Positions 1 to 5,301 of a DNA stretch of 64,000 bases are shown piece after piece; positions within the stretch are counted from its first letter, which is position 1; every line of letters begins with the position of its first letter. The stretch lies in the sequence record MW845758.1. The stretch is one strand, 5' to 3'. The translations under genes were made by a program, and so were the position numbers. The notes beneath the pieces were generated by a model. It was not told the DNA's origin. It did no database searches and worked only from the letters and a program-made list of their open reading frames with translations.

Positions 1-10
1 AATTTGATTC

Positions 11-200
11 CATAGTGGTTGCCGCTCCTACGGAGCAAGCGGCCCGAGCGAAACGTCCACCCGGTGGCTGGTGTCCTGACGATGCATGCGATGATGGGGT
101 AACCCTGAGCTGCGAACTGTTAGGTGCCTGCGACTTACCGGAAGGTATCGTCCATACGTCGTTTCTCAATGGCTAGATAACGGTGGGCTTCGGCCCACCA
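11..200 (+). ncRNA. Candidate structured ncRNA A upstream of tRNA-Cys
   Basis: No ORF. Hairpins GCCGCT/AGCGGC (21-43), GGG-GTAA-CCC (96-105), TACC-GGAA-GGTA (136-147), GGTGGGC-TTCG-GCCCACC (182-199): GNRA and UUCG tetraloops. Confidence 0.5.
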
Positions 201-204
201 CACC

Positions 205-279
205 GGAGCAGTGGCTGAAAGGTTAGGCGGGTGATTGCAAATCACTTCCATGGCGGTTCAATTCCGTCCTGCTCCTCCA
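205..279 (+). tRNA. trnC: tRNA-Cys(GCA)
   Basis: Acceptor GGAGCAG/CTGCTCC, loop TT-GCA-AA, T-loop TTCAATT, U73 plus encoded CCA. Confidence 0.95.
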
Positions 280-301
280 ATTTGATTCTCTCGAGACTCG
301 A

Positions 302-472
302 ATGAAATTAAAGACCAAGTTGTACATCGCGGCTGCATTGTTCTTCATGCTGCTCGGTCACTTCGTTGGCCGAATCATGACACTCTTCGGTATCGTACTC
401 GTTATCGGCTTTGTCATCGTTCTGGCTTGGCCTGTCATCAGACGCTTTCTTCCGAAACGAAAAAGTATCTGA
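302..472 (+). CDS. Small membrane protein (56 aa), below the ORF-track cutoff
   Basis: ATG302 to TGA472 translates MKLKTKLYIAAALFFMLLGHFVGRIMTLFGIVLVIGFVIVLAWPVIRRFLPKRKSI: two hydrophobic segments with basic ends. Confidence 0.7.
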   Translation: MKLKTKLYIAAALFFMLLGHFVGRIMTLFGIVLVIGFVIVLAWPVIRRFLPKRKSI

Positions 473-534
473 TACGTACTGGGGACGTTCCCTCCGTACG
501 CACTCTCTCTTAAAACCTTTCAGGAAATAAAAAC

Positions 535-1365
535 ATGAGAAAGTTACTCATTGGGGTATTGGCATTTTTAAGCTTCTCGGTCATGGCAGGCGAAAACGTC
601 GTCATCACCACCGGACAGCAGGGCCTGACGTATAACTCCGTTTACGGGGTGAACTTAGCCGGCGCTCTGAACGAGTTCGGTAATAAGTCGCAGGTTATTC
701 CGTCCAAAGGTTCACTGGACAACCTCGACAAAGTCGCCGCGAACGAAGCCCAAATCGGTTTCACGCAGGCAGATGCTTTCCAGTTCTGGCGTGCTAAGCA
801 CCCGAACGAAGCACAGAACGTTGACATCGTTGGTCAACTGGCAAAAGAGTGCGTGTGGGTGGCTGTCAAGAAAGACGGCAAAATCACCAAAGCCTCTGAC
901 CTGACCAACGGTGCGAAGATTGCGGTCGGTGACCCTGATACCGGTTCATACGCCAGCTGGCAGTATCTGCAGCAACTGGTGAAAGAATACGGCAAAACAG
1001 AAACCTACGCCAAAGGCGGTATCCGTTCGCTGGCCAAAGTCGCCACAGGCGAATACGATGCGTTCTTGTGGGTATCGGCTTCCGGTAAGAACAACAAATT
1101 CCTGGACGCGGTCAACCAAGACAGCTCCGGTCTGCAATTGATTGACATGTCCACGTGGAACGTGAACGACAAACTGCCGAACGGTCAAGCCGTTTACACC
1201 AAAGAGACTGCGAAGGTTAACAGCAGCTTCTTCGGTGGCAATGTTGACGTACCGTGTACTACCACGTTGGTTGTGGCGAACAACAATTCTTCCGACGAGC
1301 TGTTGGATGCGGTCTCTACGATTCTCTTGAAGAATCAGGGTCGCGTTCTCGGCACGGCGAAGTAA
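535..1365 (+). CDS. TAXI-family (TRAP-associated) periplasmic solute-binding-like protein
   Basis: Signal peptide MRKLLIGVLAFLSFSVMA. Motifs ITTGQQGLTY, SKGSLDNL, IGFTQADA, IAVGDPDTGS typical of TAXI receptors. SD AGGA. Confidence 0.8.
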   Translation: MRKLLIGVLAFLSFSVMAGENVVITTGQQGLTYNSVYGVNLAGALNEFGNKSQVIPSKGSLDNLDKVAANEAQIGFTQADAFQFWRAKHPNEAQNVDIVGQLAKECVWVAVKKDGKITKASDLTNGAKIAVGDPDTGSYASWQYLQQLVKEYGKTETYAKGGIRSLAKVATGEYDAFLWVSASGKNNKFLDAVNQDSSGLQLIDMSTWNVNDKLPNGQAVYTKETAKVNSSFFGGNVDVPCTTTLVVANNNSSDELLDAVSTILLKNQGRVLGTAK

Positions 1366-2130
1366 CGGTTTTCATCGACTAGTCCGGTAGGGTTAATGTC
1401 CCTGCTGGAACGGGTGTCAGGGTTTCACCCAACTTTACCTGACGAACTGAGACCGTAAGCAGACCAGTAAGTCTTACGCAGTCGGAGCACACAAAGCACT
1501 ATCTCTGCGGAGGTAGGTGTTCTGCCCGTTACGGACAACCTCATTAGGTGCGTAAATGATTAGAGCTCTGGTCCATCATGCGCTTGGCCTTCTTCGGAAT
1601 GTCATGAGCAATATGCGACTCTGGAGACTCGATAGCTATTGGTTCACAGGCTGTGGGACTGTACGCCATAAACCTGTTTCGAGACAACTGTCTCCGACTC
1701 CGGTGTCCTTAACGGACGAAGGTCAAGCACCAGCCCATTAAGCTGGCTCGCTGACATAGGCAACCATCACCCACAATCTGAATGTAACTGATGGGATTGA
1801 GTTCCCAGATGCGAACGAGTAGCTGTGTGCTACTGAGCACCTCCCCGGGACTGCTGAGCAGCGGGGGAATAGGGCCAAAAGGAAAGTAATAGGGGTCGGT
1901 GCTTGGAGGCGCTAAGACCTGTCCGCGGACAGGCTCAGAAGAAGAAGTCCATCGACCCCCGTTTATCAGGAGTAGCAAAATGGCTGGAACCGCACTGATG
2001 GTTGTTGAGCAACCGAAAGATGAATACACGTTGCAACTGCGTAGCCCTTATCAGGACCCACGTCCGGGAATCCTGTTAACGCTGGCTTTGCTGTTAGCTG
2101 CGCTGGAACACCAATTACAGCAGTAACCGT
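1366..2130 (+). ncRNA. Candidate large ornate ncRNA B (~765 nt)
   Basis: Many nested helices with G-U pairs, e.g. 1384-92/1400-08, 1416-21/1438-43, 1484-90/1517-23, 1761-69/1996-2004, 1892-98/1953-59. No convincing long ORF. Lies directly before tRNA-Leu. Confidence 0.65.
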
Positions 2131-2146
2131 ATATATGCGAAACATT

Positions 2147-2231
2147 GCCGAGGTGGTGAAATTGGTAGATACAGGGGATTTAAAATCCCCCGGCTTAGGT
2201 CGTGCGGGTTCGACCCCCGCCCTCGGTACCA
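2147..2231 (+). tRNA. trnL: tRNA-Leu(TAA)
   Basis: GCCGAGG acceptor, GGGGA-TT-TAA-AA-TCCCC anticodon arm, long variable arm, TTCGACC T-loop, ACCA. No intron. Confidence 0.95.
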
Positions 2232-2232
2232 A

Positions 2233-2308
2233 GCAGGCATAGCTCAGTCGGTAGAGCGTCTGGTTTCCAACCAGAATGTCGTCAGTTCGAACCTGACTGT
2301 CTGCTCCA
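2233..2308 (+). tRNA. trnG: tRNA-Gly(TCC)
   Basis: TCTGG-TT-TCC-AA-CCAGA anticodon arm, U73, CCA. Confidence 0.95.
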
Positions 2309-2412
2309 AAATGTGATTACATGATTACACTGTTATATGCGAAGAGCATGTGTGTTAAGCTAAGCTGTTGTTTGTCAACGGTTTATCTTAGTTTATATGT
2401 ACAAGAATTATT

Positions 2413-2497
2413 GGCGGGTTACTCAAGCGGCAACGAGAGCAGACTGTAAATCTGTTGACTACGGTCTTCGGTGGTTCGAGTCCACCACACGCCACCA
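2413..2497 (+). tRNA. trnY: tRNA-Tyr(GTA)
   Basis: GCAGA-CT-GTA-AA-TCTGT anticodon arm, long variable arm, ACCA. Confidence 0.95.
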
Positions 2498-2503
2498 AAC
2501 AAC

Positions 2504-2579
2504 TTTCCGTTCATCTAGAGGCCTAGGATACGTCACTTTCACTGACGGTACACGAGTTCGAATCTCGTACGGAAAACCA
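2504..2579 (+). tRNA. trnE: tRNA-Glu(TTC), copy 1
   Basis: TTTCCGT/ACGGAAA acceptor, CGTCA-CT-TTC-AC-TGACG anticodon arm, ACCA. Confidence 0.93.
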
Positions 2580-2585
2580 AATACT

Positions 2586-2661
2586 TCTCCCATCGTCTAG
2601 AGGCCAAGGACCCCGGGTTTTCAGTCCGGTAACGCGAGTTCAAATCTCGCTGGGAGAACCA
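2586..2661 (+). tRNA. trnE: tRNA-Glu(TTC), copy 2 with a divergent body
   Basis: TCTCCCA/TGGGAGA acceptor, CCGGG-TT-TTC-AG-TCCGG anticodon arm, ACCA. Confidence 0.93.
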
Positions 2662-2671
2662 AACACAAGAA

Positions 2672-2775
2672 CGTAATCCTGCGGTGTGGTTAGTCGCCAC
2701 TACTAGCGGTTACGCGATACCCACTGCTGCGGGGAGTGTAATAGTGAGGCGGTTGACCCCGCCAAGCAAGCAGCG
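2672..2775 (+). ncRNA. Candidate structured ncRNA C (two long hairpins)
   Basis: CGTAATC(2672-78)/GGTTACG(2708-14) enclosing GTGG/CCAC. CTGCT..AGCAG enclosing GCGGGG/CCCCGC (about 2724-2773). Confidence 0.45.
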
Positions 2776-2783
2776 CGCAATTT

Positions 2784-2859
2784 AGGGGATTAGCTCAGCT
2801 GGCAGAGCACCGGTCTCCAAAACCGGGTGTCAAGTGTTCGAATCACTTATCCCCTGCCA
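2784..2859 (+). tRNA. trnW: tRNA-Trp(CCA)
   Basis: CCGGT-CT-CCA-AA-ACCGG anticodon arm, G73, CCA. Confidence 0.95.
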
Positions 2860-2865
2860 AAGTTT

Positions 2866-2942
2866 AGGACTGTAGCTCAGACGGTTAGAGTGCCGCCCTG
2901 TCACGGCGGAGGTCGCGGGTTCGAAACCCGTCAGTCCTGCCA
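2866..2942 (+). tRNA. trnD: tRNA-Asp(GTC)
   Basis: CCGCC-CT-GTC-AC-GGCGG anticodon arm, G73, CCA. Confidence 0.95.
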
Positions 2943-2959
2943 TTTTTAAGTTGTACAAA

Positions 2960-3035
2960 TGCGTCTTAGCTCAGTTGGTAGAGCGCACCCCTGATAAGGG
3001 TGAGGTCACTGGTTCAAGTCCAGTAGATGCAACCA
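2960..3035 (+). tRNA. trnI: tRNA-Ile(GAT)
   Basis: CACCC-CT-GAT-AA-GGGTG anticodon arm, ACCA. Confidence 0.95.
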
Positions 3036-3041
3036 AACAGT

Positions 3042-3116
3042 TGGGGCGTCGCCAAGCGGTAAGGCCCGGGGCTTTGATCCCCGTATGCACAGGTTCGATT
3101 CCTGTCGCCCCTGCCA
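3042..3116 (+). tRNA. trnQ: tRNA-Gln(TTG)
   Basis: CGGGG-CT-TTG-AT-CCCCG anticodon arm, G73, CCA. U1:U72 mismatch. Confidence 0.93.
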
Positions 3117-3120
3117 AACA

Positions 3121-3384
3121 ATGACACTGTCCCCATGCGTGCTTCGGCATAACGCGGAAGAGGGATGGCAGCCAATAAAAGCATCAGTCATTAACCGTAG
3201 CCTTCGGGTGTAGATGGTGAAGACCGCTAAGTGCAGCCTTTAGAACTCCGTGAGATTCGGAGCGGTGTCACCCTTTCAATGAACGTGCCACCCTAGCAGA
3301 ACTGAACGGACTTATCTCCTGCAGAGTGTCCCCGTTTGTGTTCTGTTCGGGCGGGCTGGTTTAGATACCAAGCGTTCACCCTTT
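3121..3384 (+). ncRNA. Candidate structured ncRNA D (three domains)
   Basis: ATGAC/GTCAT (3121/3191) enclosing a UUCG hairpin. GGTGA/TCACC (3216/3272) enclosing ACCGC/GCGGT. Rod GAACG/CGTTC (3281/3377) enclosing GCAGAAC/GTTCTGT. Confidence 0.55.
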
Positions 3385-3385
3385 T

Positions 3386-3461
3386 AGCTTCTTAGCTCAG
3401 TCGGTAGAGCAACCGAATCATAATCGGCAGGTCGGTGGTTCGAGTCCACCAGAAGCTACCA
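3386..3461 (+). tRNA. trnM: tRNA-CAT, probably elongator Met
   Basis: AGCTTCT/AGAAGCT acceptor, loop AT-CAT-AA, ACCA. Lacks the fMet C1:A72 mismatch and the E. coli Ile2 C4:G69/C5:G68 pairs. Confidence 0.85.
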
Positions 3462-3465
3462 GTAC

Positions 3466-3585
3466 ACACGTCAGAAGGATCATCCCCTCTTGACGAAACC
3501 AATAGGCGCGCGGGGTGTTAACGTTCAGGGCGAAGCAATCCTGAATGAAGTCGTCTGACATGTCAGGGGGCAAGCGGCCATTAAT
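3466..3585 (+). ncRNA. Candidate structured ncRNA E
   Basis: CGTCA(3469-73)/TGACG(3491-95) and TTCAGG(3524-29)/CCTGAA(3540-45) hairpins; palindrome CTGACATGTCAG. Confidence 0.35.
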
Positions 3586-3588
3586 TTA

Positions 3589-3664
3589 GACTCTGTAGTT
3601 CAGTCGGTAGAACGGTGGACTGTTAATCCATATGTCGCAGGTTCAAGTCCTGCCAGAGTCGCCA
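3589..3664 (+). tRNA. trnN: tRNA-Asn(GTT)
   Basis: GTGGA-CT-GTT-AA-TCCAT anticodon arm, G73, CCA. Confidence 0.95.
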
Positions 3665-3670
3665 CACAAT

Positions 3671-3789
3671 GGTGTTGTAGTACGTAGTCTCTTCAGAAGG
3701 TCCATGGTTCGAATCCTTGCTTGCCCTTAACGGGGTGTGTAGCTCAGAGCGGTCTAGAGCACCTGAAGAGAAGTATTGCAACGCCACCA
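3671..3789 (+). ncRNA. Circularly permuted tRNA-like RNA (YrlA/Y-RNA topology) ending in ACCA
   Basis: T-arm CATGG-TTCGAAT-CCTTG (3703-19) precedes a loop-closed acceptor-like stem (3720-39) and D-arm GCTC-AGAGCGGTCTA-GAGC (3742-60). Anticodon stem replaced by CTCTTCAG/CTGAAGAG plus a 13-bp terminal helix 3671-83/3773-85, then ACCA. Confidence 0.8.
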
Positions 3790-4096
3790 TCTTTGCGATG
3801 GGACAATCATCGAATGGCATTCCGGAAAAATTTCATTCAACCTAACACGTGCTGATTGTTCCAAAGCAAACACTATACAGACAGAAGCCGAATAGGTTTT
3901 TCTATCGCGCATACGCCCAGAGCCATTACTGGCTTCCGTCTGTTCCAAGTTTGTCAGTCAGGTAAGTTCGTTTTCCATTATGGATACTTGCTGTGTCAGC
4001 CTGACTGGCAATCCACATTAGCCCGCGCTAATAGGTGTCTGGGAATGACCCGCTCAGAGGCCACCCTTGAGTTAAGATTCGACTTCTAAAGCACCA
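3790..4096 (+). ncRNA. Candidate structured ncRNA G (~305 nt)
   Basis: 10-bp helices 3800-09/3853-62 and 3953-62/4000-09; 3877-82/3938-43 enclosing 3884-89/3931-36. 3' end has T-loop-like AGA-TTCGACT-TCT followed by GCACCA. Confidence 0.55.
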
Positions 4097-4107
4097 ATGC
4101 CAGGGTA

Positions 4108-4140
4108 CCCTTCTCCTTAACCGGAGAAGGGATTACTCTA
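4108..4140 (+). terminator. Probable terminator closing the RNA island
   Basis: CCCTTCTCC-TTAACC-GGAGAAGGG followed by an AT-rich tract. Confidence 0.6.
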
Positions 4141-4150
4141 TTTTATTTCG

Positions 4151-4170
4151 GATAGATGTAATCAATGTGA
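4151..4170 (+). promoter_or_regulatory. Putative early (virion RNAP) promoter motif
   Basis: GATAGATGTAATCAATGTGA, variant of GATAGA-TATTAT-N4-GTGA. Confidence 0.6.
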
Positions 4171-4212
4171 AGGAATATGCATTTCAACTAATCGACCATC
4201 AAGAGGCCCATC

Positions 4213-5301
4213 ATGAACGCACGCATGTCAAGCTACAATCCAAATGGTTCACCAAAAGTAGACGCTATCAGCAGTCTGCAGGCATTAGGTTATACCCTGC
4301 GTCAAGCAAAGAATATTCGTCCTTGGCTCCCCCGTCAATTCGGCATGGCAGGTAATGCGCTACCACGCGCTAACCTCGAGTTCTGGAAAGCGTATGAGAT
4401 AGTCAAGGACATGCAGAAGTACCAGAAGTCCAACGCACTCTCCCTCCAATTCGACGGAGCGAAAGGACAAACCTGCTTCACCTTTAACAACAACGAATTC
4501 TTGCGCTACAGAAGCCCCACCCTTGAGACAACAGTCTGGTCATTGGAGTTTGTACGTCATTTCGGTGACGGCCTGTGGCGTAGCGCTAACGACGTCTACG
4601 AGGGTGGTCCTCGTGCCCTCGAATACATCGGTGAGAACATCCGCTTGAAACGCGGTGAGCTGGCGAAAGCTATTGAGCTGATGGAAACCAAACCGCGGGG
4701 GTACGATATCAACTCTGACTACCAGTGGTTGCTCTGGGATAAGAACCAGTACATCGTCAATGCAACCGAGTCCGTGAAAACGTTCTGGATGATGGCAGCT
4801 ATCTGTCACTCTAACCTGACCGTGAGTAAAGGTTGGAACTTGCATCCAGAAGGACTGTTCATCACTAAGTACCAGTCCTTTGACCCATCTCGCTTTGCAT
4901 TCGGCTTGAAGACGTTGTGTGAACTCTACACAGCACCAGATGTGCTCAACACCGCAGGGTACCATTCCAGCAAAGAGCGTCTGATGCGTATGCACGCTAT
5001 CCAGATACTCCAGCAACGGAGTTTCATTTCCCTGATGGATGGGAATTTCCTGCCGGGTTTACACCTGAAAGGCAACAGCTTTATCTTTGAGAAAACCGCA
5101 GTAGAAGAAACAATGTCAGACTACGCCAACGTGCCTTCCGCGATGAGTGGTCTCTTCCCTTGCTTCTTATCCTCAACAGCGATGCAGACGTTTAACGGCA
5201 TCCCTGAGAACTACGCAACGATACTCCGTGTGCCTGAATCGCTGACCCAAGTTTATACACCGGGTGAGTGGACAGACGCGGTGCGTAACGTATTCCGTTA
5301 A
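4213..5301 (+). CDS. Hypothetical protein (362 aa), probably early
   Basis: SD GAGG, long ORF between the promoter motif and a terminator. No recognisable motif. Confidence 0.85.
   Translation: MNARMSSYNPNGSPKVDAISSLQALGYTLRQAKNIRPWLPRQFGMAGNALPRANLEFWKAYEIVKDMQKYQKSNALSLQFDGAKGQTCFTFNNNEFLRYRSPTLETTVWSLEFVRHFGDGLWRSANDVYEGGPRALEYIGENIRLKRGELAKAIELMETKPRGYDINSDYQWLLWDKNQYIVNATESVKTFWMMAAICHSNLTVSKGWNLHPEGLFITKYQSFDPSRFAFGLKTLCELYTAPDVLNTAGYHSSKERLMRMHAIQILQQRSFISLMDGNFLPGLHLKGNSFIFEKTAVEETMSDYANVPSAMSGLFPCFLSSTAMQTFNGIPENYATILRVPESLTQVYTPGEWTDAVRNVFR

Follow-up and report, generated by a model that had tools for sequence, protein, structure and literature searches.

We report a large structured RNA element in jumbo phages related to SPN3US. 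The stretch of DNA analysed here (64,000 nucleotides, hereafter the window) is the start of the genome of Erwinia phage pEa_SNUABM_11 (MW845758.1; 251 kb; Wellingtonvirus), itself an SPN3US-like jumbo phage, and the element occupies positions 1384-1959 of its plus strand (576 nt). Over 1300-2200, the window shows 100% identity to the same positions of that genome. We consider it probable, with moderate confidence, that the element is a multi-domain structured RNA specific to SPN3US-like Enterobacterales jumbo phages that doubles as the mRNA for a peptide of about 60 amino acids, with a leader that gates translation of this peptide. Two kinds of constraint meet in this one RNA locus, pairing of bases over almost its whole extent and codon structure in the 66 nt inserted between the domains. 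Literature searches returned no paper describing the element, which is previously undescribed. An earlier note on the window had proposed a candidate non-coding RNA of 765 nt at 1366-2130, either a member of the GOLLD or ROOL families or a new large RNA class. The presence of a large, elaborately structured and conserved RNA beside phage tRNA genes is indeed borne out by covariation in 24 homologues, and the note's figure of at least 15 helices is fair for 1384-1959; the conserved block, however, is this shorter interval and not 1366-2130.

The region of the element was found by BLAST in approximately 60 genomes of phages of Erwinia, Salmonella, E. coli, and Proteus. The genera represented are Wellingtonvirus, Erskinevirus, Seoulvirus, and Machinavirus, the latter including divergent phages of the ChrisDB/Caitlin type. 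A few contigs were added by exact-pattern scans of IMG/VR and of metagenomes, and a protein search with the embedded open reading frame (ORF) yielded a single match, the metagenomic locus L040, because this ORF is rarely called as a gene. Of the 15 loci from the 20-mer scan of metagenomes, six matched by chance where an unrelated gene begins. With 15-mers, viral and genome collections gave essentially random matches and otherwise only known members (L084, L106, L119), with no bacterial homologue among the matches listed. The comparative analysis is based on 24 distinct sequences from five clades that are mutually 50-60% identical, and ordered anchors from the 5' hairpin to the 3' element are kept in all of them (24/24). 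The surroundings vary. A TAXI gene precedes the element in most Erwinia phages and an unrelated 80-aa gene in Seoulvirus; downstream there is, depending on the phage, a tRNA, a ParB-like gene, an HNH gene, or a small ORF. The distance to the 11-tRNA array is 188 nt in pEa_SNUABM_11, and in relatives a tRNA follows at 8-30 nt.

The 5' domain (1384-1530) consists of the hairpin P1 and of a junction closed by P2 (Table 1). Of the 26 pairs in an RNAalifold consensus of 18 sequences, 18 have undergone compensatory double changes. When the named structure, including the pseudoknot described below, was scored on the 24 homologues, 94.6% of cells were paired, compared with 75.2% in shuffled alignments, and double changes occurred in 21/31 pairs. 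The covariation score of 0.606 was reached by none of the 500 shuffles (0.228), and partners slid along the alignment scored 0.07-0.10. P1 shows double-sided changes in 6/9 pairs and has many G-U pairs. The junction-closing helix was shifted by one column in the MAFFT alignment and its pairing was therefore read by hand; its variants include AACGGG/CCCGUU, GACGGA/UCCGUU, GCCGGU/ACCGGU, UACGGU/ACCGUA, and GCCGGG/CCCGGU. The single-sequence minimum free energy (MFE) fold of 1384-1960 (z = -2.87; 0/100 shuffles) likewise recovers P1, P2, P2a, P3, and P4/P4a. All four local helices named in the earlier note belong to this domain and hold. Its CCGGUAGGG/CCCUGCUGG is the covarying P1; GUCAGG/CCUGAC is the arm P2a, real although variable between clades; CGUAAG/CUUACG (1454-1459/1473-1478) is the covarying P3; and GGAGCAC/GUGUUC(U) around CUAUCUC-UGCG-GAGGUAG (1499-1516) is P4/P4a.

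Scanning the whole alignment for antiparallel segments with conserved complementarity revealed a pseudoknot between the loop of P1 and a CAUUA sequence located just upstream of the ORF. The four pairs of its core are about 99% paired, and two of them covary (AU:18/GC:4 and GC:12/AU:9). Its 3' strand abuts a sequence resembling a Shine-Dalgarno (SD) site, and is thus placed at the region of ribosome binding. Another long-distance candidate, a pairing of J3/4 (AGYCRG) with UUGGUU (1639-1644), was rejected: it consists mostly of G-U pairs and is broken in SPAsTU and pEa29.

The 3' domain (1621-1808) is enclosed by a long-range helix, the 5' strand of which includes an invariant Trp codon of the ORF. 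RNAalifold with ribosum scoring pairs 1621-1630 with 1799-1808; 96.9% of the cells of this helix are paired, one pair varies as CG:11/UA:7, and five pairs vary only in wobble-compatible ways. Among the inner helices, helix 3 has double changes in 4/5 pairs, pair 112-152 alternates between GC:9 and UA:8, and pair 121-133 between GC:17 and AU:3. In the region 1775-1808, helix 7 is 99% paired yet nearly invariant. For the named structure as a whole, 91.7% of cells are paired (87.3% in shuffles) and 8/34 pairs show double changes; the covariation score is 0.186 against 0.119 in shuffles (0/500), with slid partners at 0.02-0.09. The GGGAUUGAGUUCCCAG block can enter either the long-range helix or a local pairing, and the two are mutually exclusive.

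Further downstream are two hairpins and a terminal rod (1818-1959). The first hairpin, the base of the second, and the rod were tested jointly: 95.7% of cells are paired compared with 82.5% in shuffles, double changes occur in 17/35 pairs, and the score is 0.383 against 0.148 (0/500 shuffles). Thus, the collection of homologues and the covariation analysis that the earlier note had suggested gave three separate tests, each beating 500/500 shuffles. For the second hairpin (1835-1876), the homologues show at least three versions unrelated in sequence, the distribution of which contradicts the phylogeny of the remaining element; this pattern in the alignment suggests module exchange by recombination. 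One version, GGCGCGGUACCUCAUACGGCCGGUACGCC, is nearly identical in Asesino, Seoulvirus, and pSal-SNUABM-04, and the close relatives Stratton and Machina carry another. The strands of the rod's internal loops, GUGCUUGGAGRCGCUAAGACC and CUCAGAAGAAGAAGUCCAU, are near-invariant, and its base and apical stems covary. Moreover, facing loop bases switch jointly from CGCU/AGAA to GGUU/AACC in pEa_SNUABM_4 and Caitlin, which supports an extended hairpin. The possibility that the rod is a tRNA-like element was rejected, as no tRNA model matches it, it has no T arm, and covariation favours the extended hairpin.

An AUG-initiated open frame of 55-64 codons is present at the equivalent place in 24/24 homologues. 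The stretch from the AUG to the invariant Trp codon (17-24 codons) is nearly unalignable between clades but keeps its frame, and length changes in both halves of the ORF are always multiples of three. Codon structure was assessed by counting parsimony changes within clades, where alignments are ungapped. Between the AUG and the Trp codon, changes at positions 1/2/3 number 47/24/67 (p = 4e-5); the rest of the ORF (30/25/39; p = 0.2) and the controls in the 5' domain (66/85/63; p = 0.14) and the 3' region (112/91/104; p = 0.33) show no such periodicity. The profile phrog_26199, built of Machina-type proteins, is matched over residues 5-38 by the peptides of pEa_SNUABM_11 (E = 2e-5; 1.9e-5 unrounded) and SPN3US (8e-5), while no significant match to these peptides was found in Pfam. 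AlphaFold2, run on an alignment of 11 rows, predicts one helix at residues 2-31, with block means of the predicted local distance difference test (pLDDT) of 82, 85, and 69 over residues 1-30, and values below 50 for residues 38-61. With codon periodicity and a predicted helix, the N-terminal part of the ORF behaves as a translated amphipathic helix: the comparison demonstrates that the ~22 codons at its start, coding for this basic helix, are under selection of the translation type. An open frame, a start codon, position-2-depleted substitutions, and a profile match, i.e., the marks of a small-protein gene, thus come together in the N-terminal part only, and constraint on the second half of the ORF appears to act on the RNA. 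The label "non-coding" in the earlier note is therefore not supported. A conserved frame in place of conserved base pairs, which that note had named as evidence against its proposal, is found at 1556-1741, with periodicity in the N-terminal part, whereas base pairs are conserved elsewhere.

The long-range pairings that had been proposed beyond the conserved block fared less well. A perfect 9-bp helix between 1761-69 and 1996-2004 has its 3' arm in a protein gene absent from most relatives, the contig L022 shows a central U-U mismatch there, and the 1761-69 arm instead pairs locally with 1719-1723. GCGTAGC/GCTGCGC (2039/2103) lies inside the same gene (1980-2126) and pairs at just 5/7 positions in L022. 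The end-closing ACGGTT/AACCGT (1365/2130) joins two stop-codon contexts, has no equivalent pairing in relatives, and its 3' arm falls within a TTAC-N-TATATG motif.

Assignment to a known RNA family failed as well. At gathering scores, Rfam 15 recognises only tRNAs in the window; at E <= 10, it gives nothing relevant in 1-4300. For 1366-2146 alone (781 nt, most permissive filters), the best matches were models of eukaryotic small nucleolar and long non-coding RNAs at 10-17 bits, which is noise on either strand. GOLLD, ROOL, OLE, group I introns, and RNase P, i.e., the models that the earlier note had listed for such a search, are therefore excluded as families, together with transfer-messenger RNA (tmRNA); HEARO, raiA, and all other Rfam 15 covariance models are unmatched too (noise <= 17 bits). 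Membership in GOLLD or ROOL is thus not supported, since neither model reached E <= 10 even with the 781 nt alone, and the other half of that proposal, a new large RNA class, comes nearer, as no curated family matches. Several individual candidates were also rejected. The RNase P-like motif GAAGUCC has neither a model match nor a conserved P4 partner. A group I or II intron is contradicted by the absence of an Rfam match and of a downstream exon, and by the upstream gene, which is intact, ends in a stop codon of its own, and is not the same in all genera. For tmRNA, ARAGORN and Rfam are negative, the ORF starts with AUG in all homologues, and end-to-end pairing is not conserved. As for a type I toxin mRNA of the hok kind, the peptide is a charged amphipathic helix rather than transmembrane, and again there is no Rfam match.

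The element might be explained as an ordinary small-protein mRNA, with the peptide as sole product and the flanking structures as cis elements that tune translation from the 5' untranslated region or, as 3' hairpins, halt the phage RNA polymerase or block 3' exonucleases; the RNA itself would then be without a function. Consistent with this, the ORF is conserved with a coding signature, the pseudoknot abuts the ribosome-binding site, and the element stops just before a promoter-like motif, resembling the end of a transcription unit. We nevertheless regard this explanation as rather unlikely, since conservation is higher in the RNA parts than in the peptide, whose N-terminal coding part is the most variable stretch of the element, and rod strands of 19-21 nt are invariant across clades otherwise 50-60% identical. 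Furthermore, RNA covariation and predicted disorder, in place of codon periodicity, mark the second half of the ORF, and the ~220 nt of covarying structure past the stop codon go far beyond the needs of a terminator. The converse explanation, a purely non-coding ornate RNA that is a functional analogue of GOLLD or ROOL and in which the ORF has arisen by accident in a loop region that varies, draws on the size, helix number, and phage context beside tRNAs, on the location of the invariant Trp codon and of the majority of conserved "protein" positions in RNA helices, and on the missing coding signal in the C-terminal half. It appears improbable to us given the depletion of N-terminal substitutions at position 2 (p = 4e-5) against flat controls, the AUG and open frame that 24/24 homologues preserve although both halves vary in length, always in steps of three, and a protein-profile match between clades whose DNA is unalignable there; the GOLLD and ROOL models are also unmatched. 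Given its conserved embedded ORF, the element is not a purely non-coding RNA.

A DNA-level element, such as a replication origin, packaging site, or promoter cluster, or else decayed tRNA or intron remnants, could be suspected from the location where the genome conventionally starts, within a variable region rich in tRNAs, from the one hairpin that occurs in swapped versions, and from the fact that the minus strand folds well too. Indeed, MFE z-scores (-2.34 for the plus strand and -3.64 for the minus strand) do not discriminate, the minus strand scoring better, and G-U counts were used for the choice of strand instead. Many supported pairs are G-U (GU:18, GU:22, UG:13) and would be A-C mismatches on the opposite strand; their abundance identifies the plus strand as the RNA. 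Such strand-specific compensatory changes with frequent G-U pairs make an explanation at the level of DNA very improbable. In addition, neither repeats nor iterons were noticed, the element matches no model of a tRNA, tmRNA, or intron, and there are no split flanking exons, the upstream gene having its own stop codon and differing between genera.

In the most economical mechanism for the structured RNA that doubles as an mRNA, its pseudoknotted leader would act as a translational operator that gates access of the 30S subunit to the AUG, in response to a ligand, a protein, or possibly the peptide itself. A translating ribosome would melt the long-range helix and the inner hairpins of the 3' domain; since it must melt this helix, translation of the ORF and folding of the 3' domain would be mutually exclusive, and the local GGGA/UCCC hairpin would be the alternative fold when the long-range helix is removed. 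The invariance of the rod argues for a conserved binding partner, for which the rod is a likely binding surface, and it may likewise be a protected 3' end of the RNA. In Stratton and Asesino (Erskinevirus), a tRNA begins 8 nt after the rod, so that tRNA processing (RNase P cleavage) would release the RNA and define its 3' end. The final output could be either a stable ribonucleoprotein (RNP) or control of downstream expression.

Several observations weigh against this interpretation. What points to gating of translation is the geometry of the pseudoknot, and the SD-like sequence is weak or distant from the AUG in Machinavirus and Seoulvirus. RNAalifold with default scoring prefers the local, invariant GGGA/UCCC hairpin over the long-range helix, in which just one pair shows a double change. 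The rod is strongly diverged in Kwan and Wellington; hence, a rod of exactly this sequence is not essential. As the homologues come from about five independent lineages, the shuffle statistics overstate their independence. The element is delimited here by sequence comparison, its ends being the limits of the conserved block, and a promoter was looked for upstream of P1 and not found, so the element may be a mere tail of the upstream mRNA.

SPN3US and Asesino are nucleus-forming jumbo phages (PMC13282480), and both carry the element. Tentatively, the element may represent a new class of large dual-function phage RNA and a core feature of the nucleus-forming SPN3US-like jumbo phages, with a folded body (the 5' junction domain, the 3' domain, and the invariant rod) that acts in trans as a stable RNA or RNP. 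If so, this trans-acting RNA possibly joins its own encoded helical peptide or a higher-order assembly, and it could act on the host's machinery for translation or RNA processing, or on phage tRNA and mRNA traffic. Approximately 600 nt that are annotated as empty or as "hypothetical protein" in about 60 deposited genomes are one RNA element, backed by covariation along its whole length, and this element stands out as the best-conserved feature of an accessory region that otherwise varies, in a model group for the phage nucleus (SPN3US, Asesino). The coexistence of coding and structural constraints in one molecule offers a directly testable case of translation-coupled RNA folding.

Table 1. Features of the RNA element and its surroundings, in positions of the window
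Feature	Position	Strand	Remarks
TAXI/NMT1-like solute-binding protein gene	535-1365	+	deposited annotation; PF16868, phrog_6856
Gap without annotated feature	1366-1979		deposited annotation
P1 hairpin	stem 1384-1392/1400-1408, 7-nt loop 1393-1399	+	CCGGUAGGG/CCCUGCUGG; closing pairs GGG...CCC conserved
Pseudoknot 5' strand (P1 loop, UAAUG)	1394-1398	+	pairs with 1542-1546
P2, junction-closing helix	1409-1414/1525-1530	+	pairs in every sequence
P2a, variable arm (GUCAGG/CCUGAC)	1417-1422/1438-1443	+	different sequences in other clades; missing in Seoulvirus and ChrisDB-type phages
P3	1454-1460/1471-1478	+	double changes in 6/7 pairs
P4	1484-1490/1517-1522	+	double changes in 4/6 pairs
P4 bulge, ACAAAGCA	1491-1498	+	conserved, 8 nt
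P4a	1499-1505/1510-1516	+	double changes in 3/4 pairs
Pseudoknot 3' strand (CAUUA)	1542-1546	+	abuts SD-like AGGUG 1546-1550; 10 nt upstream of AUG 1556
ORF, 61 codons (phrog_26199)	1556-1741	+	AUG-to-Trp part 1556-1621 with coding signature; remainder inside 3' RNA domain
Long-range helix 5' strand (CUGG-AG-ACUC)	1621-1630	+	includes invariant Trp codon UGG; pairs with 1799-1808
Hairpin	1681-1685/1690-1694	+	inner helix of 3' domain
Hairpin	1705-1708/1714-1717	+	covaries by eye: GUCC/GGAC, GUCUA/UAGAC, CGUC/GACG, UCAC/GUGA
Helix	1719-1723/1763-1767	+	inner helix of 3' domain
Two-step hairpin	1726-1728/1750-1752 and 1731-1734/1742-1745	+	ORF stop codon UAA (1739-1741) in loop
AAUCU/GGAUU	1775-1779/1794-1798	+	
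Long-range helix 3' strand (GAGU-UC-CCAG)	1799-1808	+	
Hairpin with conserved UGUGU loop	1818-1834	+	double changes in 4/6 pairs
Variable hairpin	1835-1876	+	base pairs covary (4/5)
Rod hairpin, 68 nt	1892-1959	+	10-bp base stem, purine-rich internal loops, variable apical hairpin
Small protein gene, 48 aa	1980-2126	+	annotated coding sequence; AGGAG SD; phrog_10783 match, E=1e-7; outside conserved RNA
TTAC-N13-TATATG motif	2115-2137	+	precedes tRNA-Leu 2147-2231
tRNA-Leu	2147-2231	+	first gene of 11-tRNA array ending at 3664

According to the deposited annotation, all genes neighbouring the element are on the plus strand. The periplasmic-type TAXI/NMT1-like protein is unusual cargo for a lytic jumbo phage, and another accessory gene upstream of the element (302-472) encodes a TciB-like/DUF3927 small membrane protein (phrog_1470). 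The small gene downstream of the element is found, besides pEa_SNUABM_11, only in the contig L022 (20/25 identities in the first 25 aa, the products being homologous) and is absent from Kwan, Stratton, Asesino, Machina, and SPN3US. In the metagenomic relative L040, an HNH endonuclease gene (3535-4056) lies immediately downstream of the element, which fits a mobile-insertion hot spot beside a conserved RNA.

The motif TTAC-N10-14-TATATG has two copies in the 64 kb (2115-2137 and 2317-2339; 0.19 expected), both directly upstream of tRNA groups, and TTAC-N-TATATG is also located 3' of the element in most relatives (L007, L008, L011, L040-L042). Judging by this placement, it is probably a promoter of a phage RNA polymerase. 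Sigma-70-like promoters are missing from the first 4.3 kb (0 found; 3.2 expected), and just two terminator-like sites were seen there in a search for intrinsic terminators, none within the element, which fits a phage with its own RNA polymerases. A stable hairpin, GUGGGC-UUCG-GCCCAC (183-198), precedes tRNA-Cys; an identical one occurs in Seoulvirus after the gene upstream of the element (L006, L009, L012, L014). It may be a processing or termination signal.

ARAGORN finds 12 tRNAs and no tmRNA. Within the array, the gap between tRNA-Gln and tRNA-Met contains a second conserved, unannotated non-coding stretch (3158-3277, plus strand), a candidate small RNA with 91% identity in Kwan and Wellington and 87% in Stratton and phiEaH2; its core of ~47 nt (3230-3277; hairpin CUCCG-UGAGAUU-CGGAG) is 85-94% identical in Machinavirus, SPAsTU, and pEa_SNUABM_29. 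Further unexplained gaps of the array are at 2309-2412, 2662-2783, and 3462-3588. Just behind the array, 3682-3787 (plus strand) gives a weak full-length match to the Rfam family YrlA (Y RNA-like), with 19.1 bits against a gathering score of 69 (E = 0.23). It comprises, in this order, a T arm (GGUUCGAAUCC), a closed acceptor-like hairpin, and a D arm (UAGCUCAGAGCGGUCUAGAGCA), enclosed by a 9-bp stem UCUCUUCAG/CUGAAGAGA; it is absent at the same position in Kwan and partially matched in pEa_SNUABM_9. By its arrangement, it is a candidate for a tRNA-like module in permuted order, as in YrlA, or for the remnant of a rearranged tRNA. Finally, ~420 nt at 3790-4212 (plus strand), between the tRNA array and the next coding sequence, have no annotated gene and are ~79% conserved with Kwan and Wellington.

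Large structured RNAs of unknown function are rare, and GOLLD, ROOL, OLE, and raiA recently showed unexpected architectures. The element resembles GOLLD and ROOL in being several hundred nt long (576 nt, with more than 15 helices), in its many conserved helices and a pseudoknot, and in being phage-encoded directly beside tRNA genes; the function of GOLLD and ROOL is likewise unknown, and a further mark of their kind is the formation of homo-oligomeric cages. In contrast to them, it matches neither Rfam model, comes from Enterobacterales jumbo phages, and contains an ORF with a coding signature, open in 24/24 homologues and with codon periodicity at p = 4e-5. The T4 species 1 and 2 RNAs (rnaC and rnaD), ~120-140 nt long and without an ORF, are encoded in the T4 tRNA cluster, and their function is unknown. 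They are comparable as non-tRNA phage RNAs in or beside a tRNA cluster that are probably released by tRNA processing enzymes; by description, the element is set apart from them by its far larger size and its ORF.

A hairpin loop pairing immediately 5' of the ribosome-binding site is also known from the leaders of T4 gene 32, S15, and the alpha operon, and from SAM-II and preQ1-II, although the 5' domain described here is much larger than such pseudoknotted operators (~150 nt, with a four-way junction) and has no family match. Structured RNAs with an embedded short ORF include the mgtA/mgtL and mgtCBR leaders of Salmonella and the classical attenuators. There, the position of the ribosome selects between exclusive pairings, for which the long-range helix and the GGGA/UCCC hairpin would be the candidates in the element. 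Unlike these leaders, however, the element has a much longer ORF (55-64 codons), no conserved downstream gene that is obviously regulated, and no intrinsic terminator after it, the phage using its own RNA polymerases. With tmRNA it shares a stop codon in a hairpin loop, but its ORF has its own AUG and its two ends form no acceptor stem. The combination of a structured functional body and a short translated frame in one molecule is likewise found in SgrS/SgrT, RNAIII/hld, and SsrA.

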